Below are positions 444 to 34,494 of a stretch of DNA of 64,000 nucleotides, in pieces. Both the position numbers and the translations under genes were made by a program. Below the pieces are notes generated by a model. That model made no database searches, was not told where the DNA came from, and worked only from the letters and a program-made list of their open reading frames with translations. The stretch covers positions 62,001-126,000 of IMG/VR virus record IMGVR_UViG_3300030041_000009, one strand, 5' to 3'. Every line of letters begins with the position of its first letter. The first letter of the stretch is position 1.

Positions 444-3400
444 TTATACGCTCGTAATCGTCTCCCAACCTGTTGCACCACCAATTCTCATCTTATTCAA
501 GGTAGTATCGAAATACATTCCACCTTTAACATATGCTGGTGCTGCTGCAGTAGTTGCTTGTTGTGGCATTATTACTCCCTGAACTACTAAACTACCAGTT
601 GCTCCAACATACGCTTTTTCAACCCCATTATTTCTGAATGAAAATAACTTAGCTGTTGCATTTGCTAAAGCACTTGATGTATCTGTAAATGCTCCTACTG
701 CACTCGCTCCATCAACTACACGAGGATCAATTCTAAATCTTTCAGTAGATACTATTGTACCTGAAATTAATGCTCCTGAAACTGATGTACAGTTGGTTGG
801 GTTATCAGTTATATTTAATAAATTACCACTTACTGCATATGTGGAGTTACCATCAACACGTCTTGACATTATAAGTACAGAACCAGTATTGTTTTGGGTT
901 AATTTATCTACCCCATCACCTATATACATTGCTCCACCAGATGAATTTGTTGATATACCAATAAATCCAACTCCAGTTGTTGATATACCGCCTAATCCAT
1001 AAGAACTACTTGATTGTCCATAAACTCCATAATTATTTGTAGAGTTTCCATTAACTCCAGCACTATTTGTAGAGATTCCTTGAACTCCATAACTATTTGT
1101 AGAGTTTCCATTAACTCCAGTACTATTTGTAGAGTTTCCGTAAACTCCATAACTATTTGTAGAGATTCCATAAACTCCACCACTATTTGTAGAGATTCCT
1201 TGAACTCCATAACTATTTGTAGAGCTTCCATAAACTCCAACATAATTTGTAGAGGTTACATAAATACCCCTTGGAGTCTGTCCATAAATAATATATCTTC
1301 CTAAACCTGTATTTATTGTCCAATCTCCACTCGCAGGAGTTACAACATTTGTCGTACTTAAAGAATTAGAATTTCTATCAACTGTAATTGAACCTCCTCC
1401 TGTTACCGATGCACTTCTTTCAACTACTAACCAATATGAAGTACCATTAACCATCGTATAGTCTCCACCAAACAAGTATTCAACATAAGAAGTCGTTAAT
1501 GTGCCCATTTTAACCTGATCAGAAGTGTATAATAAAGCATTTGGGGCTGTACCTGTATCTGAATATAATTTAAGTCTAATATAATCTGTTGTATTTGTAA
1601 CAGTACCTATTTTCTTCAATCTAACTGATAACGAACCCATTGTGTTTGCAGCACTTGCGGTAAATTTCCAGGCATAGTATTGATTTAAAAGTGGTTCATC
1701 ATTACCTGTAGATACTATATCTTGTTGAAGATTAGTAGCATTCATCACCACGTTTAATCCATAAACAGTGCGTTGATTCTGAGTTTGAGTATTATCTAAG
1801 AAATGTAAAGGAGTTGTATATCCGCCAATACCAGTATTACCCTGTAAAATAGTTTTAGTAATTAATGTATTACCTAATGTTACTGAGTTACTTCCATTAC
1901 CAGTTGCGTTATATCCAATTACTATTTCATTTGAATTGCCATCAGCAGATGCCATTGTATTTGCTCCAATATAGACAGAATTATAAGAATTGATATTAGT
2001 TGTTACCCCTCCAGTTATATAACGACCAGATATATAACCAATAGCAGTATTATATGAAGATACAATATTACTTATCGATGAATAGCCAACAGCAGTATTG
2101 TATGATCCAACTGAATTTGAACTAAGAGAATTACCACCTAATGCAGTATTATAAAAACCAGTAGTATTTAAATTAATAGAATTAATTCCTATCGCAGTGT
2201 TATAATATCCAGTAGAATTTGAACTAAGCGCGCTTGCTCCAATGCCTGTATTATAATACCCAGCTGTGTTAGTGACAAGAACACTTATACCAACTGCTGT
2301 GTTATAATAACCAATAGAATTATTTTGTAGAGTTGCATTACCAATTGATGTATTGGCATAACCGACAGTATTGCTTAAAAGGGAATTAAAACCTATAGAG
2401 ATATTAGAAAATCCAGCTGTATTCGCTTGCATAGCACTACCACCAATTGCAACATTATTAAATCCAGTTGAATTTATCGGTAACGCTCCAGATCCAAGTG
2501 AAGTATTATTAATACCTGTTGTATTATATCTTCCAGAGTTTTTACCTATGAATAAATTTACTGAAGTATTTAAAGAACTACGAATTTCTAATGTATTAGC
2601 AGAAGAACTATCTTGAATAACATAAATAGGAGAATATGATGCAATTAATTTAATTGAAAGTATTATTGTGCCATTAAAATCAGTCGTTGGAGCAATAGTT
2701 AATGTTCCTACTGTTGCAGCTTTAGGACCATATGAGCCTGTTGCTGAATAAGTATAAGATGTAACTCCGCCGAATGTAATCGTAAATGTTCCTGTCGTCC
2801 TATTTGTTACTGTATAAGTTATTTGGTATAAATTACCAACCACTGGAACCAATGTAGAATCAGTTAATGCTGTTGTATTTCCAGTTGAGTGTGTGTATCC
2901 ACCAGCATAAGTTCCAGACCAACCAGTTTGAGTTGCAGTTCCAGTTGCATCGTTCGATACCCAAGTTGCCGTAATATAAAAGTTATTAACATCAATATAT
3001 GTTATTGTGTATGTACCATTATAATTAGTAGTTCCTGATATTACAACATTAGTTGTTGTTCCAGCTGGAAATCCATGAGCATTTGAAGTTACTTCAACTG
3101 TTCCAGCAACAGTAGATCCATAATTTGCAAAAGCAGTTATGCTTTTAGTTGTTGCTAATCCCCAAGTATCTCCAGAAGCTGTTAATTCAGTTCCTAACGT
3201 AGCAGATTCTAATGCGGTTGTAGATTTTTGAGTAAGCATAGACGTTGGAGTTACTCCAATACCTACGTTCCCTGAACTATCAATAGAAATTCTTTCAACT
3301 CCTACGGTACTCAACCCCATAGAAGTAAATGCACTTGAGTTAGCAAGTACAAGTTTTGCTCCATTCCTAGTTAGAGCTTGATTAGAAGCTAATAGAAGTC

Positions 3401-6400
3401 CATAATTGGTATTTAAAACATTTATGTGCCCATTATTTACTTCAAGTAATTGTCCAGGAGTAGTTGTTCCAATTCCAACATTTCCATTTGCTAAAACTTT
3501 AATACCAGTTGTACCTCCACCAGTTAACAATCCACCAGTTATTAAATTTCCACCTTGAACTTCTTTTAACGAAAACGTACCCAATGTGAATGTCTGTCCT
3601 GATACCAAAGTAGAAGTAATAACAAAATCAGTAGGTGTAGTAGCTGCTTTAAAATAAGTAGTTTGTGCTCCAGCTGTTATAGTAAGAGAAGTTGTTGATC
3701 CGCCAAAAGATGTTGTTATTGATGCAGATGGAGTTCCAGAAATAGCTGATACTGTATAAACAAATTTATACCATCTATATCCTACTCCTGCAACTGTTAA
3801 ATTAGCATTCGTTTGTGTAAGAGTTGAAGCAGTTCCACCAGAAAAAGTCCAAGTTGCGTTATTAGATACTAAAGTACAATCATTTGTTGCAGTCCAAGAA
3901 GTTCCACCAGATAACGTACCATTAGTTAAGCTTTCAGAACCTAAAGTTGTTGGATCAATAATATTTTGTGAACCACCCCAAACTGATAATTTTTGGTCTG
4001 GAGTGGTAGCTCCAATCCCGACGTTGCCATTATTTAAGATAACCATCACATCACCATCAACTGAACTTGTAATATTGAAATAATCAATTATTCCACTTTT
4101 ATAAATATTAAATCTTGCGTTAGGGGTTGATGAAGTTCCAAATCCTACATTTCCACTACTTCTAATTTGCATTATCTTAGTAGAGCCTTGATTAATGAAT
4201 AATCCACTACTACCATTAGCAGAACCGATATCAAAATATGAACCACCAGTATTAATGTCTCTAATCCTTAAAATTGAATTAATAGATATATTTGCAGAGT
4301 TACTTATTTCTAATAACGTTCCTGGAGTAGTAGTTCCAATCCCGACATTACCTCCAGATTTTATTCTTAAATTTTCTACATTGTTAGTTCCAAATATAAG
4401 GTCAGAACTTCCAACCGTACCAATAGTTAAATTTCTAAGAGTGCCACCTACTCCATTTAAATTATTAAATAAATAATTAGATGTACTTCTTGCAAATCCA
4501 AATAAAGTATTAGTATTAGTATCGGCTGGCGTTGAAAATGCCATATATTCATTTTTATTATTATTAAAAATGGCAAATCTAAAATCAGAGGCTGTTCCTG
4601 AATTAGAATTATACATTTGAACACCAGATGACCCTGTCGCGTTATCAGCAATTAAAACTTTAGCCGTACCAGTTCCTCCTCCATAATCAGAAGGTGTACC
4701 AAAACCTCCAATATCAACTGACGCATTAGGATTATTTGTAGTAATACCTAAATAGTGATGAACAGAATCAACAAACAGAGTATTTGTATCTACTGTTAAA
4801 TTATTAACACCTAAGTTTATTGTATTTGTATTTCCTGTGACTGGAATATAAGTAGAAGTGTCATAACTAATAGTTCCTGATGTGCTTTTTACAAATCCAG
4901 TTCCGCTTAATGCAACTTGTCTTGAAGTATCAACTGGATGAACATGTGCTCCATCAGCCCATTTACCACTTGCTCCAATTGCAGCAATTCCATTTATTAA
5001 AGGAGTTGTTGTAGCTACAACAGGAACTGATCCAATTGTTATATAATTAGATGGGTTAGTTGCGTTATAAGGAGTAAATCCTAAAGCCGTTGTAATATCA
5101 CCACTTAAAAAAGCACGTGTTTTTAATGAATAAGTTGCAGCATCATAGTAAGTAAATTGTGTATCTGTAGGTGTTTCTTGAATAGCTGCTAATTTCAATA
5201 AACTACCTACGTCTCCAACTCTTGCAAAGCCTTTATTATCAAAGACTAATTGACCATCATTAGATCCGTCATATAATTTAGCTGTAAATCCTGCATATTG
5301 TCCATCAGGTAATCCAGAAGTTGCTCCACTTCTCAAATAAATATAATCTTTAGTAGTGTATATTTGTTCTGTATGAGTTTCATATGTTGATCCTGATTGA
5401 ATAATATTTCCATCAATATGAAATGACCCACCATTATCTGTATAGACAAAAGGAGTTGTACCATTTGGTTGAAATAATTGATAATGACTATGACCAGTAT
5501 TTGAATATGTAGTTATATCAATAGTTCCATCAGCCTTTAAAAATTGATTAGATGTACCACCAGATTTAATAATTGAACTAGCTGTTAAATTATTATATCC
5601 TAAGTCTATATTTGATGTAGATCCAGTATAAGGTACATAATTATTTATAATATTCTGTGTTAATCCTGTAATTAAATTATTTAAAAATGTGTCTCCTGAA
5701 ATTCTATTAAATGTTTCACCTGTTAATAAATTATAATTATCCGTAACTGTTGATGTCAATCCAGTAATTAAATTATTTAATATTGTGTCTCCGCTTATTC
5801 TATCAAATGTTTCACCTGTTAATAATTCATTTAAAAAAGTGTCTCCGCTTATTCTATCAAATGTTTCACCAGTTAGTAAATTATTCAATAATGTATCTCC
5901 TGAAATTCTATTATTAATTTCATTATTCATTTGATTTTGAGCATTTATTGATAACTCTTCAATTAAATCATTTAATACTGTATCTCCACTTATTCTATTA
6001 AATGTTTCACCTGTTAATAAATTATAATTATTATTAACTGTTGAAGTTAATCCTGTAATTAAATCATTTAATACTGTGTCTCCAGAAATTCTATCAAATG
6101 TTTCACCAGTTAATAATTCAGTTAAAAATGTATCTCCTGAAATTCTATCAAATGTTTCACCTGTTAATAATTCATTTAAAAATGTATCACCTGATAATCT
6201 ATCAAATGTTTCACCTGTTAATAAATTATTCAAATATGTATCACCACTTATTCTATCAAATGTTTCACCAGTAAATAAATTAAAATCAGTATATGATGTT
6301 GAATCAATAGATCCATCAGCTTTTAAAAATTGAGTTGAAGTTCCTCCTGTTACAGATATTGTATTTGAAATAATATTTCCAATTACTGTTGTATTACCTG

Positions 6401-6902
6401 TTATATTAACATTACCATTTATATCTAATGTATTACCATCATATGTTAGTCCTGTATAACCAATTATTGAATTATTATTATATAATAATACTTGATTATT
6501 ACTTACATTTTGAGTATCTAACATTTTTTTATTAGAGAAAAATAACGGAGTAATATCTAATATAGGATTTTCGGTATTTAATATGAAATAACTATCATTA
6601 TATGTATCTCCTGATAAAATATAAATGTTAATTCCAGCAAATATATCATCACTTGTAGAAAAATCATTTGCTCGTAATAAAACGCCATCAGAACCTGTAC
6701 CAACATTTGAAACAATATAAATACCATTATCTATCTGATCTATCTGATTTATGACTAATATTCTATCATTTAAATTTAAAGATACTCCATCAATTACATT
6801 AGTTGACCCTGTTAAATTTACATTTTCTAATGTCGCAACGATACAAGGTTTTTTAAAACTTAATCCTTTTAATCTATCATTCGCATCTAATCTTGTACTC
6901 AT
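444..6902 (-). CDS. Giant tail fibre / receptor-binding protein (2152 aa)
   Basis: N-terminal phage fibre module (CIVAT..IDGV.L..NDRILV..Q...NGIY), 18-aa LTGETFDRISGDT repeats, GNVGIGTTTP shaft repeats, NTAVG beta-helix repeats, 10-aa GVYGxSTNSY repeats. Confidence 0.8.
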   Translation of the reverse strand: MSTRLDANDRLKGLSFKKPCIVATLENVNLTGSTNVIDGVSLNLNDRILVINQIDQIDNGIYIVSNVGTGSDGVLLRANDFSTSDDIFAGINIYILSGDTYNDSYFILNTENPILDITPLFFSNKKMLDTQNVSNNQVLLYNNNSIIGYTGLTYDGNTLDINGNVNITGNTTVIGNIISNTISVTGGTSTQFLKADGSIDSTSYTDFNLFTGETFDRISGDTYLNNLLTGETFDRLSGDTFLNELLTGETFDRISGDTFLTELLTGETFDRISGDTVLNDLITGLTSTVNNNYNLLTGETFNRISGDTVLNDLIEELSINAQNQMNNEINNRISGDTLLNNLLTGETFDRISGDTFLNELLTGETFDRISGDTILNNLITGLTSTVTDNYNLLTGETFNRISGDTFLNNLITGLTQNIINNYVPYTGSTSNIDLGYNNLTASSIIKSGGTSNQFLKADGTIDITTYSNTGHSHYQLFQPNGTTPFVYTDNGGSFHIDGNIIQSGSTYETHTEQIYTTKDYIYLRSGATSGLPDGQYAGFTAKLYDGSNDGQLVFDNKGFARVGDVGSLLKLAAIQETPTDTQFTYYDAATYSLKTRAFLSGDITTALGFTPYNATNPSNYITIGSVPVVATTTPLINGIAAIGASGKWADGAHVHPVDTSRQVALSGTGFVKSTSGTISYDTSTYIPVTGNTNTINLGVNNLTVDTNTLFVDSVHHYLGITTNNPNASVDIGGFGTPSDYGGGTGTAKVLIADNATGSSGVQMYNSNSGTASDFRFAIFNNNKNEYMAFSTPADTNTNTLFGFARSTSNYLFNNLNGVGGTLRNLTIGTVGSSDLIFGTNNVENLRIKSGGNVGIGTTTPGTLLEISNSANISINSILRIRDINTGGSYFDIGSANGSSGLFINQGSTKIMQIRSSGNVGFGTSSTPNARFNIYKSGIIDYFNITSSVDGDVMVILNNGNVGIGATTPDQKLSVWGGSQNIIDPTTLGSESLTNGTLSGGTSWTATNDCTLVSNNATWTFSGGTASTLTQTNANLTVAGVGYRWYKFVYTVSAISGTPSASITTSFGGSTTSLTITAGAQTTYFKAATTPTDFVITSTLVSGQTFTLGTFSLKEVQGGNLITGGLLTGGGTTGIKVLANGNVGIGTTTPGQLLEVNNGHINVLNTNYGLLLASNQALTRNGAKLVLANSSAFTSMGLSTVGVERISIDSSGNVGIGVTPTSMLTQKSTTALESATLGTELTASGDTWGLATTKSITAFANYGSTVAGTVEVTSNAHGFPAGTTTNVVISGTTNYNGTYTITYIDVNNFYITATWVSNDATGTATQTGWSGTYAGGYTHSTGNTTALTDSTLVPVVGNLYQITYTVTNRTTGTFTITFGGVTSYTYSATGSYGPKAATVGTLTIAPTTDFNGTIILSIKLIASYSPIYVIQDSSSANTLEIRSSLNTSVNLFIGKNSGRYNTTGINNTSLGSGALPINSTGFNNVAIGGSAMQANTAGFSNISIGFNSLLSNTVGYANTSIGNATLQNNSIGYYNTAVGISVLVTNTAGYYNTGIGASALSSNSTGYYNTAIGINSINLNTTGFYNTALGGNSLSSNSVGSYNTAVGYSSISNIVSSYNTAIGYISGRYITGGVTTNINSYNSVYIGANTMASADGNSNEIVIGYNATGNGSNSVTLGNTLITKTILQGNTGIGGYTTPLHFLDNTQTQNQRTVYGLNVVMNATNLQQDIVSTGNDEPLLNQYYAWKFTASAANTMGSLSVRLKKIGTVTNTTDYIRLKLYSDTGTAPNALLYTSDQVKMGTLTTSYVEYLFGGDYTMVNGTSYWLVVERSASVTGGGSITVDRNSNSLSTTNVVTPASGDWTINTGLGRYIIYGQTPRGIYVTSTNYVGVYGSSTNSYGVQGISTNSGGVYGISTNSYGVYGNSTNSTGVNGNSTNSYGVQGISTNSAGVNGNSTNNYGVYGQSSSSYGLGGISTTGVGFIGISTNSSGGAMYIGDGVDKLTQNNTGSVLIMSRRVDGNSTYAVSGNLLNITDNPTNCTSVSGALISGTIVSTERFRIDPRVVDGASAVGAFTDTSSALANATAKLFSFRNNGVEKAYVGATGSLVVQGVIMPQQATTAAAPAYVKGGMYFDTTLNKMRIGGATGWETITSV
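1021..1263 (-). repeat. 30-bp in-frame tandem repeat, about 8 copies (GVxGxSTNSx)
   Basis: actcca...tatttgtagag unit recurs every 30 bp. Confidence 0.9.
5660..6280 (-). repeat. About 54-bp (18-aa) in-frame repeats LTGETF(D/N)RISGDTxLN in the fibre
   Basis: attctatcaaatgtttcacc(t/a)gt recurs repeatedly. Confidence 0.9.
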
Positions 6903-6939: not shown

Positions 6940-7000
6940 TTATGTTATTGATAATTTATGTTATTGATAATTTATGTTATTGATAATTTATGTTATTGAT
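6940..7000. repeat. 16-bp tandem repeat ttatgttattgataat, about 3.8 copies, reiterating the 3' end/stop of the 6988..8346 gene
   Basis: Units at 6940, 6956, 6972 and a partial unit at 6988. Confidence 0.9.
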
Positions 7001-8346
7001 ATTATCAAACCATTAACAATATTTAATGTTTTTATTGTTCCATAATTATCAACAACAATATTTTGATTAATAGTAATTCCATTATGATAATTTGTGCCTA
7101 TACTACCAAACAATCTTAAAATATAATTATATTTAGGCGGAATTTTAATAAATGTTAAAGTTAATCCAGAGATATAATAGTCATTATTATATGTTTGTAA
7201 TTGTCCATCTACATAAAACATATGATTTTCACTTACAATTTCATTTGATAATATAAAATTTTTATTTACTCCATCTTGAATTCCAGAAATATCAATTTCG
7301 TTTATAATATCTCCATTTATACCTGATGTACCATTTGTTCCAGAACTACCTGATGAACCTGAACTACCTGATGACCCTGAACTACCTGATGACCCTGATG
7401 ATCCGCTTGTACCGTTTGTTCCTGATGTACCAAAAACACCGCCATGCTGAGTAATAAACAATCTTAAAATATCACTCTCTTTAGGAGGATTTTTAATAAA
7501 TGTTAAAGTTAATCCAGAAACATAATAATCGTTATTATATGTTTGTAATTGACCATCAACATAAAACATATGATTTTCACTAATACCACTTGATGATATA
7601 AAATTCTTATTTATACCATCTTGAATTCCAGTAATTGTAATTTCAAGAGACTCACTACCAGAAGCTCCTGATGTTCCATCTGTTCCTGATGTTCCATCTG
7701 TTCCTGATGTACCAAAAACACCGCCATGCTGTGTGATGAATAATCTTAAAATATCACTTTCTTTAGGTGGTATTTTAATAAATGTTAAAGTTAATCCAGA
7801 AACATAATAATCGTTATTATATGTTTGTAATTGACCATCAACATAAAACATGTGGATATAACTGACTCCGCTAGATAATATAAAATTCTTATTTATACCA
7901 TCTTGAACTCCAGTAATTGTAAGTTCAAGAGTTTCACTACCAGAAGCTCCTGATGTACCATTTTCTCCATCTATTCCTGATGTGCCACTTGTTCCTTGAG
8001 TATTACCAGAATAATTCCAATCTGTATCCGAAGTTAAAATTATATTTGTTAAACCACTTGTGATTACACCTTTAATTATAGAATATCTAGCGATATTTTG
8101 CCCAATGGCAACAGCAGTAAAATCTACATCAGTGTTTGGTATTCTACCTTCTTGAGTATTACCAGAATAATCAAAATCATAATAAATTGAGGTTCTTCCA
8201 GATATATATCCTGTTATTGGATGTCCATTAGAATCATTAATAAGTGTAGCATTTATACTTCCAAAATTATCTGAAAAATAAAGCCAATATTTACTGGTCA
8301 AATCTGCTATTAACGAATTATTTGGAAGTATTACTCCAGTTGACAT
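6988..8346 (-). CDS. Virion fibre/collar protein with GTS/GSS collagen-like triplets and three repeated beta domains
   Basis: (GSS/GTS)n tracts; three copies of ITGxQDGINKNF...HMFYVDGQLQTYNNDYYVSGLTLTF. Confidence 0.7.
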   Translation of the reverse strand: MSTGVILPNNSLIADLTSKYWLYFSDNFGSINATLINDSNGHPITGYISGRTSIYYDFDYSGNTQEGRIPNTDVDFTAVAIGQNIARYSIIKGVITSGLTNIILTSDTDWNYSGNTQGTSGTSGIDGENGTSGASGSETLELTITGVQDGINKNFILSSGVSYIHMFYVDGQLQTYNNDYYVSGLTLTFIKIPPKESDILRLFITQHGGVFGTSGTDGTSGTDGTSGASGSESLEITITGIQDGINKNFISSSGISENHMFYVDGQLQTYNNDYYVSGLTLTFIKNPPKESDILRLFITQHGGVFGTSGTNGTSGSSGSSGSSGSSGSSGSSGSSGTNGTSGINGDIINEIDISGIQDGVNKNFILSNEIVSENHMFYVDGQLQTYNNDYYISGLTLTFIKIPPKYNYILRLFGSIGTNYHNGITINQNIVVDNYGTIKTLNIVNGLIISIT

Positions 8347-9403: not shown

Positions 9404-10021
9404 TTAATTTTTAACTACTTTATAATCAATTAATAATCCATTATCATCATAAGCCGCATTCATTGTATAATTAGCAAAACTATTAACATTATTATTACAA
9501 TCAGTTTTAGTATTAAATAATTTTATTGTAACTGATGTCAATCTAAAATCATCATCATAAACATGATTACTTAATCTATAATTTTGCTGTGATAATCCTA
9601 ATATATGTTTAACATCAAATGAAATATCTATGATAGTATTATTCATATCTGATAATGTTTCTGTAATACCAGTTAAACTATCAATACTAGGTATATCAGA
9701 ATTTTTTGATAATATTGTAGAATTTATATTTAGATAAGGAATATCATAATCATCTGAATATAAATTATCTTGTATTGCTACATTTAAATTTTCTATTTTA
9801 ACTATCCAATTATTAGTTAAAAAAAAGTAGCTTGGAGCATTTTGATTTAATGTAGTTGGATCACCACCAAATGATCTGAATGCAGCTAGCCATTTAGAAT
9901 TATCTCCTTCTAATACCCATTGCTTCCATTCTAAATATAAATCAGTTTTAACATCAATACTTGTTACTCCACTATTTATAGTTATTATTTTTGCTGATCC
10001 ATCAAAAGTTACTTTACTCAT
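9404..10021 (-). CDS. Putative virion structural protein
   Basis: VTFDG..KII...DLY.EWK.W...GGDP...YFFL.N.W pattern typical of phage hypotheticals; structural context. Confidence 0.55.
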   Translation of the reverse strand: MSKVTFDGSAKIITINSGVTSIDVKTDLYLEWKQWVLEGDNSKWLAAFRSFGGDPTTLNQNAPSYFFLTNNWIVKIENLNVAIQDNLYSDDYDIPYLNINSTILSKNSDIPSIDSLTGITETLSDMNNTIIDISFDVKHILGLSQQNYRLSNHVYDDDFRLTSVTIKLFNTKTDCNNNVNSFANYTMNAAYDDNGLLIDYKVVKN

Positions 10022-10074: not shown

Positions 10075-10815
10075 TTAATAAATATTAGAATTATAATTAT
10101 TTGGATCATAAACAGCATCTACAAGAAAATAATAAACAATCTCATAATTTGTACTATTTATTAAAGATAATTTTATGCAATAATAACCTGGTATAGAAAT
10201 TTCTTGATACTCATTATTATTTAATAAATTTGATCCTATAATTAAAACATTTATCATATATTTATTGATACAATAATCAATATTATCAATCACATAGCAT
10301 ATACAATTATAAATTATATCAACTTTATTAATTATATTTTTATCAAATTCAAAAAGATTAAATGTTACGCCAGAATAAATATTAATTCCTGATGTTATAC
10401 CAGTTGCTCCAGAAAAATCAATAGTATTTCCTGTCAATCCTGAATTAAAAATATTACAATTAAATATTATTTCAGGAGAACTATCATTTACAACAATATT
10501 ATAAATATATGATGTAGTTATATTTCCAACAGAATCTGAAATTGAAATATATATAAAATATTGTCCATATTTTGTTAATTCATATAATTGTATATTTGTA
10601 CCTTTCTCATATAACTCAAAAGTTATATTATCTAATGGTATATTCACTGAAATGCAACCAGTTATTCCACTAATGAATAGATGTTTTAAACTATTTAATG
10701 TCCAACCTGTAACACTATCATGATATAAATGCAAATATGCATTATGTGGTACAGTAGTTCCACTACCAATCCAAGTAGTTCCACTTATAGGAGAATTATA
10801 ATATATAATAGTCAT
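10075..10815 (-). CDS. Putative virion structural protein, rich in [ST]GxT
   Basis: ORF; about 9 [ST]GxT motifs in 246 aa. Confidence 0.55.
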   Translation of the reverse strand: MTIIYYNSPISGTTWIGSGTTVPHNAYLHLYHDSVTGWTLNSLKHLFISGITGCISVNIPLDNITFELYEKGTNIQLYELTKYGQYFIYISISDSVGNITTSYIYNIVVNDSSPEIIFNCNIFNSGLTGNTIDFSGATGITSGINIYSGVTFNLFEFDKNIINKVDIIYNCICYVIDNIDYCINKYMINVLIIGSNLLNNNEYQEISIPGYYCIKLSLINSTNYEIVYYFLVDAVYDPNNYNSNIY

Positions 10816-11710: not shown

Positions 11711-11717
11711 ATTTATA

Positions 11718-12491: not shown

Positions 12492-12580
12492 AAAAAAATG
12501 TTTTCTCTTATATATAAAATTTATCATTCAAAATTTTATATAAACTTATATAATTATATTAACTATAATAAATAAAAAAT

Positions 12581-27532: not shown

Positions 27533-27536
27533 ATAG

Positions 27537-27854
27537 TTATATGTTAAATTTATCAGCAATTAATTCTAATTCATTCATATTTATATGTCCACCAAATTTA
27601 TAATTATTTTCTTCAAGATAATCGTCAAGTAATTTACCTTTATATGAATTCCATTCCCATTGTTTATTATATGGTGAATAACAAATGAATACATATTTAA
27701 TATTTTTAATTCTATTATTATTTAAAAAAAATTTAATATTATTATTAGGACATTTTATTTGTTTTAAAGATTTTTCAAATCTATCATCAGTCGGCAATAA
27801 CCAATATGTTGGTTCATTATATAATTCATTTTCAAAAGTTTTAATATATTTCAT
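27537..27854 (-). CDS. CTS-like/FNI-tagged protein
   Basis: MKYIKTFE..YWLLPTDDRFE..KFNI. Confidence 0.65.
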   Translation of the reverse strand: MKYIKTFENELYNEPTYWLLPTDDRFEKSLKQIKCPNNNIKFFLNNNRIKNIKYVFICYSPYNKQWEWNSYKGKLLDDYLEENNYKFGGHINMNELELIADKFNI

Positions 27855-30800
27855 TAATCATTTATATTTTTTATTGGATCAATTATATATTCATAGTTAG
27901 AAAAATTTGAAAAGACATTATTATTCATATTTTGAGTATTATTTGTTATTACATAAAAATCGTTATCCCAAGATGAGCTAAATATAAATCTTGAAGAAAA
28001 CTGATATCCAAATTCGTCAACTATTGGATACACAGATACATCAGTATTAGTATTACTTAATTTTAATGGAGATATTACAGGATTAATTTTTGAATAAATT
28101 AATTCTTCAATCATACCGAAGTTTTCAAATGAAGTATCGAATTTATAGTTTGATTCAAATTGACTTATAGTATTTCCTGATTCATATAAAAATGTATTAT
28201 TAAATACTGGTATTGTATTAAATATTGGTTCATAAGAGCCGTTATATCTATAAATAGAATTATCTGATGATACGCCGTTTGAAGTATTCATTATATTTTG
28301 TTGTATATTTAATGACATAGATCTAGCTAACGGTTCAGAAACATTATATTTAGTTTTTTGATTTGTATCGTAATACACTTGATATTTATCATAAATATTA
28401 GTTAATGGTCCTTTTATTGCAGTTTTAATATATGAATTTTGTTTAGTTGTTAAAACTGCTGGATCATTTAAATTTAAAATAAATGGAGTATCATTTTTAA
28501 CCCAATCAGGTATTAATGCCATGGTACCTCCAGTTGTATTCATAGGTGCTGTATATCCAGATTGTCCAATTGAATTGATATAATAATATGTTATACCAGA
28601 ATCAAATTCTGATAATGAATTCATATCATAAAATGCGTTAAATATATTTGATGCAACTATTAATGATGGATCGAATTCTTTAACATTTGCTGGATAGACT
28701 AAACTATTACCGTCTAATGTTTTTGAATTATATAATCCAAATTTTTCACCAAAAAAGGCGACATTATTTAAACTAATATAATTTTTTTGAATTGGTATTT
28801 TAACATTAACAACAACTAAAATATTTTTAAATTCTTCATTTAAAAATGCGTGTATTGCATTTGATGATATATCAATTATCGTATTTCCTGATAATCCACC
28901 TTCATATGTTGAATCATATGTATTACCAGTATAATATTGATAAACATCATTAAGAATTATTGCAAATTTATAATCATTAAAATTTTTACTATTATCAGCA
29001 ACTATACTTGTAATTGATCCATTAATATCTCTTGATACACTTGTAACATTTAATGCGTTAATATTTAAACCTTTAAATAATGTACTAGATGCTGTATATA
29101 TATCGCCTGCTTGAAAAGTTGAATATTTTAATGTTTGTTTTGTATAATTAATATCATCTATAGTAAAATATGTTTTATTTTTAAAAAAATAATCAAAATA
29201 ATCAACATTTGAATTTAGATATAAATCTAAATTAAATTTTTTACTATAATTTTCCATAAAATCTACTTCTATGTTAGTAGTTTGATTTAAATATTTAATA
29301 ATATTATTTGTATTACCTGAGAAAAAATTACCTATTCTGTAGCAGTAATCTAAATTTTTTTCTACTTCTGTTGGTAGCAAGCTAAATACATCTGCAGTTG
29401 CATTAAATACGTCTCCTATACTAATTGAATTATTTAATTTATATGGATAATCGCAATTAGAATTTGAGCCAGCGAACCCCCATTTTACAACTGATGGATT
29501 TTTTCTCCATATTTCTGTTAAATCGTTAAATGATATTTCATAAAGTTCGTCATCTGCGATATATTCAGAAGATACATTCATTATTTGATATTGTCCATCT
29601 TCACCTCTTGGATATGTCATATAATTTTGACTTAATACTGAAGTATCAGTATAATCTATAGCATATAATTTTTGTTCATCAGTTGCAGTATAAATATCTT
29701 TTTCATAGTCAAAATCAGCAAAATGTGTATTTACTCTATTAAAATCAAAATCTTTAATATCATTAAATTTTATTCTATACACAGGATAGATTAATGGTTT
29801 ATTTCCATATGTATAAATTTGTTTTGTAGTATAATAATTACTATTTTTACCACCTTTCCAATATTCTAGTCCTGTTGTGTAAGAATTTATTGCGTAATCA
29901 CTTTGTATAAAATAGCTATCATTTTTACATTTTAGTACATGATATATACCATCAATTAGTATTAAATATAAATCACCATACATTGATTTAATAGTATTTC
30001 CTGAGTAATATGGATCAATATTAAAGTTAGAAGTATATCCAGATATATAATTAGTAATACCTGATGGATTATTAATAGTTTGACAATTATAAATATAGCC
30101 ATCAGTATAATTAATAAAGCACGTTCTATCATTTGAAACATTAAAAGTAGAACCACTCATATCAAAATCACTAATAACTCTATATGTATTAACACCGTTA
30201 TTATACACTAGTACTACTTGATAAAATTCATTATCAGTCTCAGATGACGTAAGTTGTATCCAATAAGTTTTATCTAAAAAGAAACCTTCTACAAATGGAG
30301 ATTCATTAGTTGGTATGAAAGTACTTCCTGACATATAGCCAAATATATTATTCTTCAATGTAAATCCACTTATCAATTCTGGAGTTATATATGAAGTTAA
30401 ATTAGTAATCAATTCTAATTTATCAGCATAAAAACCATAATATCTATTTAATGAATAATTATGTATATTAACAGGATCTGCTGGTACATCATTAAATAAA
30501 AATTTAAAATTTAAAATATGAGGATATATTAAATTATTTGTTTTAAATGACTCTATAATATCAGATTCAAGTTTAAAATGTGGTTGTTCATATTGCAATG
30601 TTGATTGTAAAAAATTAGAAATATTAACATATCCTCCATTATTATAATCTATTCCGTAAAATTTAGAATATTCATATGATCTAAAATCCAAATCAAATGA
30701 TCTTTCTGGATATGATGTATTATTTGTAATATTTGTATTTAAAAATAATCCTAAATCTGTATTATATCTCATATCAACAAAAGATACGCATTTCCAATTA

Positions 30801-31288
30801 TTAACAATTTGAGAATTAAAATTATCTTTTGTAATTTTACCAGCACCTAAATCATCATCTTGGATATCATAAGGAGCGGAATCATCTACTCTTAATATAA
30901 CAAATCCATCTGGTATATTATTTTTTCTTATAAATAATGGCGCAAAATATTCATATGTTTCATTATACCATGTATCTTCAACTGATTTAGCACCACTCCA
31001 ATAAATATCATCAAATTGTTGTTCGTATTTAGAAAATACAGTAGAATCATCAGAATCATATTTAACATCAAATGCCAATTGTGATGATAGTCCATCATAA
31101 AATTTAACAATTTGATTTTCATATAAATTATTTTTTGATATTGAAAAATGTTTATATTTTTGATTAGATAATTGAGAATTTGTATCAAATGATTCTAAAT
31201 AGAACTTATAATCAGAACTAACAACTAATTTAACATTAGTTGTTAGTGCTGGATTTGTTCTTAATAATTGAAAGCTATTATTTATCAT
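27854..31288 (-). CDS. Large putative virion (baseplate/tail) protein, 1144 aa
   Basis: Size, N/S/T/Y-rich, about 13 [ST]GxT motifs. Confidence 0.55.
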   Translation of the reverse strand: MINNSFQLLRTNPALTTNVKLVVSSDYKFYLESFDTNSQLSNQKYKHFSISKNNLYENQIVKFYDGLSSQLAFDVKYDSDDSTVFSKYEQQFDDIYWSGAKSVEDTWYNETYEYFAPLFIRKNNIPDGFVILRVDDSAPYDIQDDDLGAGKITKDNFNSQIVNNWKCVSFVDMRYNTDLGLFLNTNITNNTSYPERSFDLDFRSYEYSKFYGIDYNNGGYVNISNFLQSTLQYEQPHFKLESDIIESFKTNNLIYPHILNFKFLFNDVPADPVNIHNYSLNRYYGFYADKLELITNLTSYITPELISGFTLKNNIFGYMSGSTFIPTNESPFVEGFFLDKTYWIQLTSSETDNEFYQVVLVYNNGVNTYRVISDFDMSGSTFNVSNDRTCFINYTDGYIYNCQTINNPSGITNYISGYTSNFNIDPYYSGNTIKSMYGDLYLILIDGIYHVLKCKNDSYFIQSDYAINSYTTGLEYWKGGKNSNYYTTKQIYTYGNKPLIYPVYRIKFNDIKDFDFNRVNTHFADFDYEKDIYTATDEQKLYAIDYTDTSVLSQNYMTYPRGEDGQYQIMNVSSEYIADDELYEISFNDLTEIWRKNPSVVKWGFAGSNSNCDYPYKLNNSISIGDVFNATADVFSLLPTEVEKNLDYCYRIGNFFSGNTNNIIKYLNQTTNIEVDFMENYSKKFNLDLYLNSNVDYFDYFFKNKTYFTIDDINYTKQTLKYSTFQAGDIYTASSTLFKGLNINALNVTSVSRDINGSITSIVADNSKNFNDYKFAIILNDVYQYYTGNTYDSTYEGGLSGNTIIDISSNAIHAFLNEEFKNILVVVNVKIPIQKNYISLNNVAFFGEKFGLYNSKTLDGNSLVYPANVKEFDPSLIVASNIFNAFYDMNSLSEFDSGITYYYINSIGQSGYTAPMNTTGGTMALIPDWVKNDTPFILNLNDPAVLTTKQNSYIKTAIKGPLTNIYDKYQVYYDTNQKTKYNVSEPLARSMSLNIQQNIMNTSNGVSSDNSIYRYNGSYEPIFNTIPVFNNTFLYESGNTISQFESNYKFDTSFENFGMIEELIYSKINPVISPLKLSNTNTDVSVYPIVDEFGYQFSSRFIFSSSWDNDFYVITNNTQNMNNNVFSNFSNYEYIIDPIKNIND

Positions 31289-31308: not shown

Positions 31309-34300
31309 TTAAGATGCTGTACTACTTCTATTTGATGATGTATTATTTCTAAATATTTTAAATATAATTTCGAATTCAAATGGTCTAGTTAAGCTTTCAG
31401 ATTCAATAAATATTCTTAATTTCCTTATTACATATGGAGATGTAGATAAATTAGTTGGAAATGTTATAGAATCATTTGTTCCACCAGATAATTTAAAAAA
31501 TATTTTAATAGGTAATATAAATTTACTATTTGCGTTAATTAATTCAACTCCACTTTTATCAGCATAAACATAATCGTTAATATTATCAATATATGGATGA
31601 ATAGTAACAGGAAAATCTGTTTCATAATTATTATCTGCTATCCAAGTACCTCCAGTCCAGTTAATATCATTAAAAATATTGATTGGTGTTGAATATGTAC
31701 CGCCAGAATTTGGTACTGTTGTACCAGTTAATCCAATATTCCAATTTTTAGAATATAATACCTGTCCTAATCCATTAGCATCATATGTTACTCCTGAATT
31801 ATATATAGCATTATTTCCTGATGTATCAGAAATCCAAACAAATTGATTATCAACTTGTGTTTGTAAATTATCATTTGAATCTACATATGTTGCTAATGAT
31901 CCATTTGAATATATTGGATTATAAAATCTATTATCACCAGAAATAGTAGGTACATATTTTCTATATGAAAGTAAGCCTAATTGTGAAGATTGAGATAAAT
32001 TATCAAATTCTAAATAATAATCATTAGTTGAATATGTACTATTATAATACGTTCTTGTAGTTGTACCAGACAATTCAGCATATTTTTCACATACTATTTT
32101 TTGTGTTATAGATGCGCCATTTTGTATAATAACACTATTAGTATTTTGATATAAACTAATTGAAAGTTCACCTTTAGCATTAGAAACAATTTGTTCAAGT
32201 GCTAAAATTCTATTAGTTAATGATGTTAGATAATCACTCAACATAATCATATTGCCTGAACTATCTTTAAAAGATGTACCTAAGTTTATATCTGTATGAG
32301 CAACATATAAATCGTTAACATAATATGATTGTTGTAAATGTGCAGTTAGTCCTTTTGAATTAAAATCACTTTCTATTTGATTATATATTTGATCATTTTG
32401 AGCAGATTGTAAAATTGTAGCATTTTCATTACCTACTTGTGCAAGATCATCTGGAAAATCAATAGTCATAATATTACTCCAATCAGATGTAATAAGTGCA
32501 TCAGGATATCCAACTTCTGATATTGATTTAATTCTAATATCAACTGTTTCGTTAGGATGTAATGGAATATCCAATTGATTTACTTTTTTTATATTTGCAT
32601 CAGTAACATCTTCAATATCCCATGTCCATACATTTAATGCTGAATTATAAGTTCTTGTTCTAGCATCTGTTGTAAATTGATACCAATTTGAAAAATATCC
32701 AGTTTCTGTTACACTTTGAGTTGATACACTTGGATTTTGATATGCTTTTGTTTGATCTACAATATCACCAGTTGAAATATAGTTAGTATATATATTTTCA
32801 GTTAAATTTAGATCAAATCCAACAGTAGTCGGAGCAGATCCACCTGTTGCACTATATCTATATTGAACAATAAATTGAACAACCTCTTGCTTTTGATTTT
32901 CTCCTACTGTATTTATTATAATAGGTTCTGGAACACTCCAAAATCCTCTTACACTAAATTCTGCCTCAACATCTGAAATTGCTCCAGTATTTTGTGCTGT
33001 TATTTGATTAACTATTGATGTATAAGATTTAGTCAAAGAAGATTGTTGATTTATTAAATTATTTAATGTTGTTTGACTAGCTTGTTTATCAGATGTTGAT
33101 TTATATTGTTTAGTACTAAGTTCTTTATTTTGTTCAATAATAGCATCATTTAATTGTTCTAATTGAGAATTTATAGATACTTTTTGTACATTTAAACTTT
33201 GAATTTTTGCGGAATCCGCAGTATTTGTTAAATGAGTATTTGTTTGTAAAACTTTAAAATTAGTAGCTGTTAAATTTGGTACATTTGGAATAACTCCAAA
33301 TTGACTAGGTATATTTTTAGCAATCAAATCTTTTAATATAGCGCCATAATCAAATACATTATCACTATAATATCTTGTCATAGAGACAGTACTATTAGTA
33401 TCCAATACTAAATTGTTGGTATAGAAAGATGTACCATAAGACCATGTTGACGAAATTACATTTGAATCAGTATTAATCGGTTTAATAAATATAACATTAT
33501 ACTCGTCATAACCAATAGATATTTTTATTGTTCTCGCTGGTAATACAGGACTATAAATCTTTAATCCTTGTGATAGTATAGGCACAGGATCTAAGCCTTC
33601 CACCCTCTCTAAAATAACTCTATAATTACTTTTAGCAGTACTAACTTCGTTAATTGTCCATAATGTTGATGAATCTTTTTTATTTATTATCAATTCATCT
33701 CCAACTGATAATTGTTTGGTATTCCCAGTATAATCGTAATATGTAATTGAACCTAATACATACCACATTTTATTATTTATTGTATCATTATCAATACCAA
33801 CAACATCAAATATACCATAGTATTGAAGGCTATCATAATCCAAATCAAATATTTGTTCATCATATGGTTCATTTCTCTGAAAAACTCCGTTATTTTTAGT
33901 GTTTGTATACCATGCAGTTAAATCATCAATAAAAATATCATTTCTATTTAAGAAATTATTTTCAAAATCAGATTTAGAATTTGCTCCATCAGATGTTAAA
34001 TTTCCATATTGATCTTTCTGAAATTCAATAATATATCTACGTGATAATACTTTTTTTACTTTTTGATCTATTTTATCAGTTAAATCAAGTTCAATAGCTA
34101 ATATAGGATCACATAATGATTCAAAAAAAGAATTATTTATAGAAGTAAAATTATTAATTGTATCTAAACTATCAATAGGACTAGGTTCACTATTTAAATC
34201 ATCAACATATATTCTTCTCATTGTTGTACCATCAGATACATAGGCTGTACTATCAGCTAATCCTGCTAATTTTTGAATATTTCTATTCGCAATATCTAAT

Positions 34301-34494
34301 TCATTTTTCAATTGTCCAACAGTTGGAAATTGATATGATGATGTTGTACCATCAGAATTCATTAAGTTAACGTTAATAACAGAATTTCTACTAGTTACGA
34401 CATCATTTAATTTTGTCATAACTTCCGTAGAATTTTTATTTAATACAGCTAGTTGTTCAGCTAATGATACAAAACTATTTTGTTGATTTATCAT
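31309..34494 (-). CDS. Large putative virion protein with central coiled coil, 1061 aa
   Basis: Size, Q-rich heptads, promoter-like motif upstream. Confidence 0.55.
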   Translation of the reverse strand: MINQQNSFVSLAEQLAVLNKNSTEVMTKLNDVVTSRNSVINVNLMNSDGTTSSYQFPTVGQLKNELDIANRNIQKLAGLADSTAYVSDGTTMRRIYVDDLNSEPSPIDSLDTINNFTSINNSFFESLCDPILAIELDLTDKIDQKVKKVLSRRYIIEFQKDQYGNLTSDGANSKSDFENNFLNRNDIFIDDLTAWYTNTKNNGVFQRNEPYDEQIFDLDYDSLQYYGIFDVVGIDNDTINNKMWYVLGSITYYDYTGNTKQLSVGDELIINKKDSSTLWTINEVSTAKSNYRVILERVEGLDPVPILSQGLKIYSPVLPARTIKISIGYDEYNVIFIKPINTDSNVISSTWSYGTSFYTNNLVLDTNSTVSMTRYYSDNVFDYGAILKDLIAKNIPSQFGVIPNVPNLTATNFKVLQTNTHLTNTADSAKIQSLNVQKVSINSQLEQLNDAIIEQNKELSTKQYKSTSDKQASQTTLNNLINQQSSLTKSYTSIVNQITAQNTGAISDVEAEFSVRGFWSVPEPIIINTVGENQKQEVVQFIVQYRYSATGGSAPTTVGFDLNLTENIYTNYISTGDIVDQTKAYQNPSVSTQSVTETGYFSNWYQFTTDARTRTYNSALNVWTWDIEDVTDANIKKVNQLDIPLHPNETVDIRIKSISEVGYPDALITSDWSNIMTIDFPDDLAQVGNENATILQSAQNDQIYNQIESDFNSKGLTAHLQQSYYVNDLYVAHTDINLGTSFKDSSGNMIMLSDYLTSLTNRILALEQIVSNAKGELSISLYQNTNSVIIQNGASITQKIVCEKYAELSGTTTRTYYNSTYSTNDYYLEFDNLSQSSQLGLLSYRKYVPTISGDNRFYNPIYSNGSLATYVDSNDNLQTQVDNQFVWISDTSGNNAIYNSGVTYDANGLGQVLYSKNWNIGLTGTTVPNSGGTYSTPINIFNDINWTGGTWIADNNYETDFPVTIHPYIDNINDYVYADKSGVELINANSKFILPIKIFFKLSGGTNDSITFPTNLSTSPYVIRKLRIFIESESLTRPFEFEIIFKIFRNNTSSNRSSTAS

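Follow-up and report, generated by a model that had tools for sequence, protein, structure and literature searches.

A Ser/Thr-Gly-x-Thr motif enriched in fibre, neck and other virion-module proteins of one clade of giant phages

In a fragment of a giant phage genome, a short [S/T]-G-x-T motif recurs in a series of neighboring genes that appear to encode fibres and other virion proteins. Is this motif a genuine protein-level signal, and if so, is it a site recognized by a modifying enzyme or simply a sequence favored by the folds of these proteins? The analyzed stretch (the window) comprises 64,000 nucleotides, positions 62,001 to 126,000 of the IMG/VR record IMGVR_UViG_3300030041_000009, which is itself a 256-kb fragment. 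A preliminary description had proposed that the motif saturates virion proteins and is a candidate sequon for phage-encoded glycosylation, with a GT-B glycosyltransferase encoded at 43807 as a candidate writer, or alternatively that it is a recurring beta-turn or ligand-binding motif. We find that the motif is five to forty times more common than chance in about a dozen unrelated virion-module proteins of one clade of megaphages. Because this enrichment is missing from sister phages with the same proteins, the motif looks like a recognition site, possibly for sugar attachment, rather than a folding requirement, although no modification has been shown.

The genes to which we refer are the following, with motif counts from exact regular-expression matches:
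444..6902 (-), giant fibre protein (2152 aa) with a phrog_4636 tail spike match at aa 1478-1595; 36 motifs (expected 9.8), 25 in the first 425 aa, 11 in aa 426-1400 and 0 in the C-terminal 752 aa.
5658..6280 (-), tandem 54-nt (18-aa) repeats TGETFDRISGDTFLNELL inside the fibre gene, identified with TRF, with two motifs per unit; they account for 22 of the fibre's 36 motifs.
6988..8346 (-), collagen-like tail fibre protein (452 aa; Pfam Collagen and tail-fibre PHROGs); 7 motifs (expected 1.5), all outside the collagen G-x-y stretch.
9404..10021 (-), 205-aa ORF of unknown function; 2 motifs (expected 0.11).
10075..10815 (-), 246-aa ORF, the densest carrier; 9 motifs (expected 0.22), including overlapping SGLTGNT and SGATGIT. 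Homologues at 44-61% identity keep most of the sites.
10835..11752 (-), 305-aa ORF; 5 motifs (expected 0.37). It is a paralogue of the 11718 protein over its N-terminal ~160 aa, and the motifs lie mostly in the non-homologous C-terminal part. The orthologue in LR756501 (125000-126130) carries 7.
11718..12527 (-), 269-aa ORF; 3 motifs (expected 0.19), all in the C-terminal part.
13383..15866 (+), 827-aa protein; 5 motifs (expected 0.6). In a tblastn search its middle part (aa ~327-484), which carries none, resembles the annotated 'neck protein' of Tenacibaculum phage PTm1. The orthologue in LR756501 has 4 against 0.32.
27854..31288 (-), 1144-aa conserved multi-domain beta-rich protein (PAU gp265 / PTm1 ORF-295 family); 13 motifs (expected 0.65), none in the conserved first 300 aa.
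31309..34494 (-), 1061-aa protein (PAU gp264 family, phrog_29329); 7 motifs (expected 0.93), 6 of them in the lineage-specific C-terminal 270 aa.
43075..43437 (-), 120-aa ORF just downstream of the glycosyltransferase gene and conserved next to it in the closer relatives; it holds the only motif found outside the carrier set in the window.
43807..45024 (-), GT-B type glycosyltransferase (405 aa), the candidate writer.

The observation in the preliminary description is confirmed, and every hand count given there was exact. All other roughly 70 ORFs of the window together hold 1 motif, and UvsW, the DinG-like helicase, ThyA, Dam and the 533-aa ORF that had been called TnpB each hold 0, consistent with the earlier statement that essentially none occur in these proteins. 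The claim that the motif saturates virion proteins is an overstatement, however, as not all virion proteins carry it. Virion protein status is shown by homology for only some carriers. The MCP, portal and sheath genes of this phage are not on the contig, which CheckV rates as about 36% complete, and we therefore examined LR756501, a complete genome of the same clade, in which the portal and the prohead protease carry none and the MCP only 3 against 0.5. In the present phage the C-terminal 752 aa of the fibre carry 0 motifs against 3.2 expected, so that the idea of a virion glycan shield also overstates the pattern.

An absence of enrichment over Ser/Thr/Gly composition had been named in advance as a result that would overturn the finding, and we therefore compared the counts with those in shuffled sequences. 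With the fibre's 18-aa tandem repeats and the repeats of the 6988 protein removed, the 13 carrier proteins of the contig hold 90 motifs against 20.2 ± 4.6 under a 20-residue local shuffle (z = 15). The 11 other orderings of the same letters are at expectation (z between -2.3 and 4.4), as are the remaining 408 ORFs of the contig (66.9 k aa), which hold 14 motifs against 13.8. In an unbiased scan of all two- and three-residue gapped patterns, SG.T ranks first (58 against 7.8, log10P -29.8). The motif is chemically strict: SG.T is enriched 8.4x and TG.T 4.1x, whereas NG.T, SG.S, TG.S and SG.I are at 1.0-1.2x, Val at position 4 is not enriched, and DG.T and AG.T each occur fewer than 6 times. Generic turn-formers and beta-branched residues therefore do not substitute. 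Flanking positions are only weakly hydrophobic, with a mild preference at -1 and at +4 to +6, and show no Asp preference at -1. Synonymous codons, including both TCN and AGY for Ser, are used as in the background, which rules out a DNA-level signal and indicates that selection acts on the protein. An all-against-all BLAST comparison rejected a shared domain among the carriers, which are not homologous to one another apart from the N-termini of the 10835 and 11718 proteins. Duplication of one unit accounts for only the 22 fibre copies, and the flanks of the motifs are otherwise unrelated.

We next asked how the motif is distributed among related phages. The enrichment is confined to one clade of megaphages, which includes this fragment, LR756501 and many IMG/VR contigs. 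A set of 120 homologues of the 27854 protein carries 981 motifs against 76 expected, and among 77 IMG/VR orthologues the counts are bimodal. LR756501 has 18 significant proteins, with 230 motifs against 31 when collagen is masked. In contrast, PAU gp264 and gp265 carry 1 and 0, and the orthologues in LR745206, LR756504 and LR756500 carry 0-1. The complete sister genome G050 has 46 motifs against 36.6, with no significant protein, and the G022 lineage (IMGVR_UViG_3300028601_000028), which sits inside the clade, has motif-free orthologues. E. coli phage PHB05, which has many fibres, has 33 against 24.6.

A global alignment of ingroup (motif-rich clade) and outgroup sequences was too fragmented for a comparison of individual sites, and we used an ingroup-only alignment instead. 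In these aligned orthologues, sites switch in place as a unit, with SG[SAYI]T in some sequences against D[KQSED][IY][WF] in others (for example SGST versus DKIW) and SGIT against NYIN, together with subclade-specific gains, giving 71 distinct sites in 21 sequences. Motif triplets are retained in 67% of close relatives against 42% for random triplets (P about 0.01), indicating short-term purifying selection. In distant ingroup members retention is 12% against 12%, yet most of them still carry 5-13 motifs (three carry 3-4 and two carry 1-2), so that the number of motifs is kept while their positions turn over.

To see where the motifs lie, we mapped them onto predicted structures, a check that had also been proposed beforehand with surface exposure in mind. 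In a confident AF2 model of the 27854 protein (pLDDT 84, pTM 0.86), the sites at 320, 429, 787 and 1037 are exactly strand-[S/T] G x T-strand, i.e., two-residue hairpin turns, and 10 of 13 motif Gly residues are in coil whereas 3 are within strands. A location at tight turns is thus seen for some sites and not for others, which leaves this property of a structural motif undecided, and solvent exposure of the sites was not computed. The model for the densest carrier, the 10075 protein, was uninformative (pLDDT 52, from only 8 sequences), with the motif regions scoring lowest. Foldseek against PDB and a wide VIA-align search gave nothing above noise for the fold of the 27854 protein, and BFVD returned only uncharacterized PAU gp265-like and PTm1 proteins. 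Its place in the virion therefore rests on gene context in PTm1, where it lies between the neck protein and the portal, protease and MCP genes. Conserved core segments of five carriers hold 2 motifs against 0.8 expected, while their variable segments hold 31 against 2.1.

Co-occurrence of motif enrichment with glycosyltransferase genes was a further test suggested at the outset. The 43807 protein matches the phrog_7162 'glycosyltransferase' profile over its full length (E 2e-45), its ESM Atlas neighbors are viral 'RfaG / Glycos_transf_1' GT-B clusters, and Pfam Glyco_trans_1_4 scores 23.2 bits, below the 27-bit cut-off; no PDB relative was found by sequence. Orthologues (53-100% identity) are present in 13 of 50 records, all in the motif-rich clade, and are absent from all 30 records outside that clade, 9 of them at least 90% complete, as well as from LR745206, LR756504, LR756500 and PAU. 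This co-occurrence is perfect, but it maps to one stem branch of the tree and so counts as a single event, shared by about 30 other genes of this contig, and it does not settle whether the enzyme and the motif are functionally linked. Among these approximately 30 strongly conserved ingroup-only genes, the glycosyltransferase is the only one of the 11 checked against family libraries that has a predicted group-transfer function not aimed at nucleic acids; the other annotated genes (RtcB, DNA methylases, gp32-like and polB-like) act on nucleic acids. The gene lies among ThyA, Dam and homing-endonuclease genes rather than structural genes, 9 kb from the nearest carrier. A T4-style DNA-glucosylation role in partnership with a pyrimidine hydroxymethylase is unlikely, because the neighboring ThyA passes the ThyA equivalog cut-off and ingroup genomes have only one ThyA-family gene; this is only indirect evidence for a protein acceptor, which was not assayed here. 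A search for homologues in other viral lineages found only members of the same clade, but distant homologues (27-28% identity) occur in phi92-like coliphages, including PHB05, without the motif, a result that is neutral for the hypothesis and provides a negative control for fibre-rich phages.

The interpretation offered in the preliminary description is partly supported. Our data show that the motif is selected at the protein level, that the folds do not need it, that it is gained and lost as a unit, and that its number is kept while its positions drift. It behaves like a sequon, with three strict positions and one free one. We regard it as a lineage-specific short recognition motif, maintained by selection on turns and loops of the variable, non-core parts of a defined set of virion-module proteins (fibres, neck-like protein, PAU gp264/gp265-like proteins and small ORFs beside them) in one clade of very large AT-rich phages. 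That it is read by a clade-specific trans-acting factor is an inference, as is the identity of that factor, for which the cytoplasmic 43807 glycosyltransferase is the best but unproven candidate. In this view, the enzyme would attach a sugar to the Ser/Thr hydroxyl at position 1 (or the Thr at position 4), using Gly to expose the backbone and the Thr three residues on as the second recognition element. From standard beta-hairpin geometry, residues i and i+3 of a two-residue hairpin are cross-strand neighbors, and their two hydroxyls would point to the same face, making a compact site recognizable on a folded protein. We hold this reading only tentatively. No glycan or other modification has been observed, and virions were not examined by mass spectrometry or glycan staining; the contig covers only about 36% of the genome, so that the true reader could be encoded elsewhere; distant homologues of the enzyme in phi92-like coliphages come without the motif; non-virion proteins show no avoidance of the motif; several sites are canonical tight hairpin turns, as a purely structural motif would be; and the fibre's C-terminal third, likely its most distal part, has none. 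A more ambitious version of the model, which is not excluded but which we consider unlikely, is that a clade of megaphages of about 250-735 kb, probably infecting Bacteroidota, runs its own cytoplasmic protein O-glycosylation system with [S/T]-G-x-T as a defined tetrapeptide sequon, read by a phage GT-B enzyme on folded beta-hairpins and continually repositioned on the variable parts of fibres and neck or head appendages, giving a bacteriophage counterpart of a viral glycan shield.

Two other explanations survive, each doubtful and to a similar degree. In the first, the motif is a recognition site for something other than the 43807 glycosyltransferase, such as another phage or host enzyme (a kinase, ADP-ribosyl- or other transferase), a shared assembly chaperone for fibre-like proteins, or a repeated weak ligand-binding element in which paired hydroxyls contact host polysaccharide; the glycosyltransferase would then serve another purpose, such as modifying the host envelope. 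The evidence for a functional reader fits this idea equally well, the gene neighborhood of the enzyme is not structural, 64% of the genome is unseen, several ingroup-only ORFs have no assignable function, and the glycosyltransferase family is widespread in phages that lack the motif. However, no alternative enzyme with the right phyletic pattern was found. The ART/Tpt1-like paralogue family (12581, 39806, 40518) is rejected as a writer because it is patchy, absent from close motif-rich relatives and present in outgroups, and a ligand-binding role does not explain why the fibre's receptor-distal C-terminal third lacks the motif.

In the second, the motif is purely structural, a favored tight-turn sequence (Ser/Thr cap, Gly at the first loop position, Thr starting the next strand) adopted by this lineage for folding or stability of beta-rich virion proteins, with no trans-acting reader. 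The hairpin sites, the coil positions of Gly, the mild hydrophobic preference at flanking positions, as at strand ends, the apparently beta-rich or fibrous nature of all carriers and the lack of avoidance in non-virion proteins are consistent with this idea, and the earlier suggestion of a recurring beta-turn is partly right about where the motif sits. It does not explain why only one lineage has the motif. The motif is not conserved wherever the fold is, since orthologues with the same domains in PAU, LR745206, LR756504, G050 and G022 have few or none, and at aligned sites Gly is replaced by K, Q, E, Y and S, so the backbone does not need Gly there. Asn, a classic turn cap, is not enriched at position 1, only 4 of about 18 two-residue hairpins in the model use the motif (the others use NG, DG, NN or DD), positions turn over, and the fibre-rich PHB05 shows no enrichment. 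An artefact of composition, low complexity, tandem or collagen repeats, or a DNA-level signal is refuted, despite the fibre repeat and the collagen-like G-x-T runs that inflate TG.T in some LR756501 proteins, because the enrichment survives repeat removal, local shuffling, collagen masking and permuted-motif controls, codon choice is as in the background, and the rest of each genome sits at or near expectation.

The closest parallels differ in specific ways. In mycobacteriophages, phage-encoded glycosyltransferases are proposed or shown to O-glycosylate structural proteins in the cytoplasm, giving lineage-specific decoration of virions (Freeman et al. 2023, Cell Host Microbe), with the enzyme genes adjoining the structural genes and the sugars on Ser/Thr-rich C-terminal extensions of capsid and tail-tube subunits, without a defined tetrapeptide. 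Neither feature is found here, where a strict motif is internal and scattered through fibre, neck and accessory proteins and the gene lies among nucleotide-metabolism genes. The general O-glycosylation system of Bacteroidota, the group mostly infected by the relatives named by tblastn, marks many unrelated proteins through a three-position sequon, D-[S/T]-[A/I/L/V/M/T] (compare PMC6120980 and PMC8698959), which is not the motif enriched here; that system acts on exported proteins in the periplasm through a lipid-linked glycan, whereas phage structural proteins fold in the cytoplasm and the candidate enzyme is a soluble GT-B. POFUT1/2 and POGLUT, GT-B enzymes acting on folded EGF and TSR repeats, also recognize a short consensus with a hydroxyl acceptor on a small beta-hairpin-rich fold, but they are eukaryotic ER enzymes with a consensus framed by cysteines, and no sequence relationship to the 43807 protein was detected. 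Type II' two-residue hairpin turns have Gly at the first loop position, and several motif instances are predicted to be exactly such turns, but generic turn statistics do not require Ser/Thr before the turn and Thr after it and would favor Asn and Asp as well, and the orthologues show that the turns exist without the motif. Finally, the N-x-S/T sites of enveloped viruses show a similar maintenance of number with shifting positions concentrated in variable regions; those sites are N-linked and made by host machinery in eukaryotic viruses, and the comparison is only an analogy for the evolutionary pattern. A literature search for an SGxT/TGxT sequon found nothing relevant.

If the motif is a modification site, it would be the first sequon-defined protein modification system of a phage. 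Modification sites could then be predicted from sequence alone in uncultured giant phages, a compact tag-and-enzyme pair would be added for glyco-engineering, and the question would arise of what a decorated fibre or neck does, whether resisting proteases, evading defences or controlling adsorption. Even if no modification exists, a tetrapeptide gained in parallel at more than 70 sites of one protein family and in more than a dozen unrelated proteins of one lineage is an unusually clean case of selection on a short linear motif in viral structural proteins, and it serves as a sequence marker for that clade.

The window (bases 62001-126000) lies within a single 256,033-bp viral contig with a G+C content of only 22%, which CheckV rates as about 36% complete. 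Searches with its large proteins by tblastn identify relatives only among very large phages, including uncultured 460-735-kb phages (LR7565xx, LR745206), Prevotella Lak phages, Sphingomonas phage PAU, and Tenacibaculum, Chryseobacterium and Flavobacterium jumbo phages; overall, relatives are 350-735 kb. The phage is therefore probably a fragment of a megaphage, most of whose named relatives infect Bacteroidota. No portal, major capsid or sheath gene was found on this fragment. The region 444-34494 holds several genes for motif-carrying proteins (carriers): a 2152-aa fibre with a tail-spike-like segment, a collagen-like fibre, several small ORFs of unknown function, a protein whose middle resembles the annotated neck protein of phage PTm1, and two large conserved proteins orthologous to PAU gp264 and gp265. 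These are interrupted by a serine-recombinase unit, a UvsW helicase and a homing endonuclease. In PTm1, the gp265-like gene lies between the neck protein and the portal, protease and major capsid genes, so that virion status is supported by homology or context for the larger carriers, but is assumed for the small ones. Other features of the contig are:

Window 16008-18244 (+): a serine recombinase (Resolvase plus MerR HTH; phrog_6620 'transposase') followed by a 533-aa ORF with no Pfam or PHROG hit. The 'TnpB' label given to this ORF in the preliminary description is not confirmed; the unit looks like an IS607-type insertion inside the fibre/neck gene cluster.
Window 22801-23769 (+), window 45308-46246 (+) and genome 47278-48492: several related HNH/homing-endonuclease genes scattered through the contig.
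Window 47054-48244 (+): a 396-aa protein with a C-terminal OmpA-family peptidoglycan-binding domain.
Window 59730-63631 (+): at least 14 tandem paralogous ORFs of about 88 aa with overlapping stop and start codons, sharing a conserved N-terminus (MKKQNINVGDKLLCK) and C-terminus (FYTKQEERKIKLEKLYEE), with a mean pairwise identity of 41% and no Pfam hit.

We first counted [ST]G.T by regular expression. The counts of 36, 7, 2, 9, 5, 3, 5, 13 and 7 in the nine carriers reproduce every one of the hand counts made previously, whereas all other roughly 70 ORFs of the window together hold one. Per-protein shuffles give P at or below 0.001 for eight carriers and 0.006 for the ninth. Four more carriers lie outside the window:

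Genome 54178-56208: carrier.
Genome 157285-157638: carrier.
Genome 159242-161107: carrier.
Genome 161146-161508: carrier.

We then applied stricter controls. We removed the tandem 18-aa repeats of the fibre (22 copies; DNA repeat at 5658-6280) and two of the three repeats of the 6988 protein (proteins are named by the start of their ORF), and shuffled within 20-residue blocks to keep local composition. Under these conditions we observed 90 motifs against 20.2 +/- 4.6 expected (z = 15). The eleven other orderings of the same letters give z between -2.3 and 4.4, and the other 408 ORFs of the contig (66.9 k aa) hold 14 against 13.8. An unbiased scan of all two- and three-residue gapped patterns in the carriers ranks SG.T first (58 against 7.8, log10P -29.8), followed by its sub-pattern G.T and by TG.T. 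The motif is chemically strict: SG.T is enriched 8.4-fold and TG.T 4.1-fold, whereas NG.T, SG.S, TG.S and SG.I are at 1.0-1.2-fold and DG.T and AG.T did not reach the counts listed. The third position is essentially free, and the flanks show only a mild preference for hydrophobic residues. Serine in the motif is encoded by TCN and AGY in the same proportions as elsewhere, as are the Gly and Thr codons, indicating that selection acts on the protein. The carriers are not BLAST-homologous, except for the N-termini of the 10835 and 11718 proteins. The observation made in the preliminary description is confirmed.

We next asked whether the enrichment is a property of the folds. The 27854 protein, the PAU gp265-like carrier, has hundreds of homologues, of which the best 120 carry 981 motifs against 76 expected. 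Among 77 IMG/VR orthologues the counts are bimodal: about 30 orthologues (40-100% identity) carry 7-13, a few carry 3-5, and those at 30-36% identity carry 0-2, and this holds at similar G+C. A maximum-likelihood tree places all motif-rich sequences in one clade of 21 rows with support 100, whereas its sister (the contigs G049 and G050) and the other 24 rows are motif-poor. Other comparisons agree. PAU gp264 and gp265 carry 1 and 0 motifs, and the orthologue pairs in LR745206, LR756504 and LR756500 carry 0-1, while those in LR756501 carry 4 and 12. The complete 735-kb LR756501 has 18 proteins with P below 0.001, which together hold 230 motifs against 31 expected with collagen-like G-x-y runs masked, and its other 951 ORFs are close to expectation; its carriers include the orthologues of this window's carriers. 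In contrast, the complete 348-kb sister genome G050 has 46 against 36.6 and no significant protein, and E. coli phage PHB05, a myophage with many fibres and tailspikes, has 33 against 24.6. The motif is therefore not a general property of fibre or beta-rich virion folds.

One contig inside the motif-rich clade departs from this pattern. In IMGVR_UViG_3300028601_000028 (G022), an 82-kb fragment, the orthologues of the 13383 (neck-like), 27854 and 31309 (PAU gp264-like) proteins carry 0, 1 and 2 motifs, and the contig total is 5 against 6.0 expected, a possible secondary loss. No glycosyltransferase (GT) gene of the kind considered below is on the fragment, but gene order differs there, so its absence from the genome cannot be inferred, and the present data lack an independent contrast of this kind.

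In an ingroup alignment, the three fixed residues appear and disappear together at homologous positions. Site 381 reads SGST, SGAT, SGYT or SGIT in one subclade and DKIW, DQIW, DSYW or DDIF in others; site 900 reads SGIT against NYIN or PYIN; site 419 reads SGYT against NSVS or QNLS; and other sites (325, 458) are TGxT or SGxT only in one subclade, inside insertions. Glycine is replaced by Lys, Gln, Glu, Tyr and Ser, so the backbone does not demand Gly there. The 21 sequences use 71 distinct sites. Among close relatives (65-79% identity) a motif triplet is retained in 67% of comparisons against 42% for random triplets (P about 0.01). Among distant ingroup members retention is no better than random (12% against 12%), although most of them still carry 5-13 motifs. 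The number of motifs is maintained while their positions turn over, which is the behaviour of a short linear motif or sequon and not of a fold-determining element.

To locate the motif structurally, as had been proposed when it was first described, we turned to AF2 models. The model of the densest small carrier was poor (pLDDT 52), but that of the 27854 protein, using 81 sequences, reached pLDDT 84 and pTM 0.86. Of its 13 motifs, those at 320, 429, 787 and 1037 are predicted to be exactly strand-[S/T], G-x in a two-residue loop, then T-strand. The motifs at 307 and 409 immediately precede a strand, those at 378, 657, 800 and 919 are in coil, and those at 416, 897 and 910 lie within or at the edge of strands. 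Only 4 of about 18 two-residue hairpins in the model use the motif, the rest using NG, DG, NN, DD and similar. In such a hairpin the residues at i and i+3 are cross-strand neighbours, and the two hydroxyls would lie side by side; this is inferred from standard hairpin geometry, and surface exposure, the property that the proposed mapping was meant to assess, was not computed. Along the sequences, the motif avoids conserved cores, with core limits taken from homology: aa 1-300 of the 27854 protein, aa 1-790 of the 31309 protein, the shared N-termini of the 10835 and 11718 proteins, and the neck-like segment of the 13383 protein together hold 2 motifs against 0.8 expected, whereas the lineage-variable remainders hold 31 against 2.1. 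The C-terminal 752 aa of the fibre (window 444-2699, aa 1401-2152), which include the tail-spike-like segment, hold 0 against 3.2 expected although they are rich in Ser, Thr and Gly; a second tandem repeat, with a 30-nt period, lies at 1017-1264. In LR756501 the portal and the prohead protease/scaffold carry 0 and the major capsid protein 3 against 0.5. The statement that the motif saturates virion proteins is therefore too strong, and the motif instead marks a defined subset of proteins and particular parts of them.

The preliminary description named one gene as a candidate writer of a modification at the motif:

Window 43807-45024: GT-B type glycosyltransferase (predicted).

This ORF matches phrog_7162 'glycosyltransferase' over its full length (E 2e-45) and Pfam Glyco_trans_1_4 weakly, below the cut-off. 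Its ESM Atlas neighbours are viral GT-B 'RfaG / Glycos_transf_1' clusters, one cluster of related GTs carrying a LAGLIDADG insertion, and no relative was found in the PDB by sequence or by profile. Co-occurrence of the motif with GT genes across related phages had been put forward as a test, and we examined it directly. Orthologues (53-100% identity) occur in LR756501 but not in LR745206, LR756504, LR756500 or PAU. Among 50 IMG/VR records they occur in 13, all inside the motif-rich clade, including the three records whose orthologue of the 27854 protein has only 3-4 motifs. The ingroup records without a hit are fragments estimated 5-23% complete, and all 30 records outside the clade lack the gene, including 9 estimated at least 90% complete. 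The association is perfect, but it represents a single evolutionary event and leaves the link between gene and motif undecided. Of 421 ORFs on this contig, 71 have a tblastn hit in LR756501 and 36 in G050, and about 30 are strongly conserved in LR756501 only. Ten of these besides the GT were checked against Pfam: RtcB (an RNA ligase at genome 18612-20006), three DNA methylases, gp32-like and polB-like proteins, a weak nucleotidyltransferase match, and three proteins with no confident match. The GT is thus the only one of those checked with a plausible protein-modifying activity, but 64% of the genome is unseen. Binding of the GT to a carrier was not modelled.

We also considered an alternative writer, a family of three paralogues with 27-32% identity:

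Window 12581-13327 (+): paralogue.
Window 39806-40507 (-): paralogue.
Window 40518-41213 (-): paralogue.

These share a conserved Y-H ... G-L-x-K ... R-x-Y pattern and a faint ESM Atlas resemblance to ADP-ribosyltransferase folds, with up to 9 copies in a related 640-kb genome. The candidate was rejected because its patchy distribution does not follow the motif: it is absent from close motif-rich relatives and present in outgroups. Two observations count against the GT as well. Its conserved neighbours are ThyA, Dam, a homing endonuclease and a 120-aa ORF, not structural genes, and homing-endonuclease copies also lie next to it in relatives. In addition, distant homologues in phi92-like coliphages come without the motif; in PHB05 (NC_052652.1, 103278-106454 and 24522-27786) there are four adjacent glycosyltransferase genes, two of them 27-28% identical to the 43807 GT, plus a dTDP-rhamnose synthesis cluster, with a target that is not known to us and no SGxT enrichment. 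A T4-like DNA-glucosylation role for the 43807 GT is in turn argued against by the neighbouring ThyA, which passes NCBI's ThyA equivalog cut-off, and by the presence of only one ThyA-family gene in ingroup genomes.

A literature search for an SGxT or TGxT sequon found nothing relevant in the library searched. The closest known systems are mycobacteriophage virion glycosylation and the Bacteroidota D-[S/T]-[AILVMT] system, and each differs in a defining feature that was tested here. Two other explanations of the motif are possible, each of which we regard as less likely than O-glycosylation by the 43807 GT. A purely structural turn motif is weakened by the motif-free orthologues, by the failure of Asn, Ser and Ile to substitute, and by the turnover of sites, but is helped by the hairpin positions and by the lack of avoidance in non-virion proteins. 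Recognition by some other factor or ligand is rated equally.

The earlier interpretation, in which the motif is a post-translational modification site with the 43807 GT as a candidate writer, is partly supported. Our analysis demonstrates that [S/T]-G-x-T is a protein-level, chemically strict motif under selection in one phage lineage, that it spans more than a dozen unrelated proteins whose folds do not require it, that it is gained and lost as a unit, and that its number is kept while its positions move. What we infer beyond this is that something specific to that lineage reads the motif. We judge O-glycosylation by the 43807 GT to be the single most likely mechanism, a reading that, with the assignment of the GT included, we hold only tentatively.
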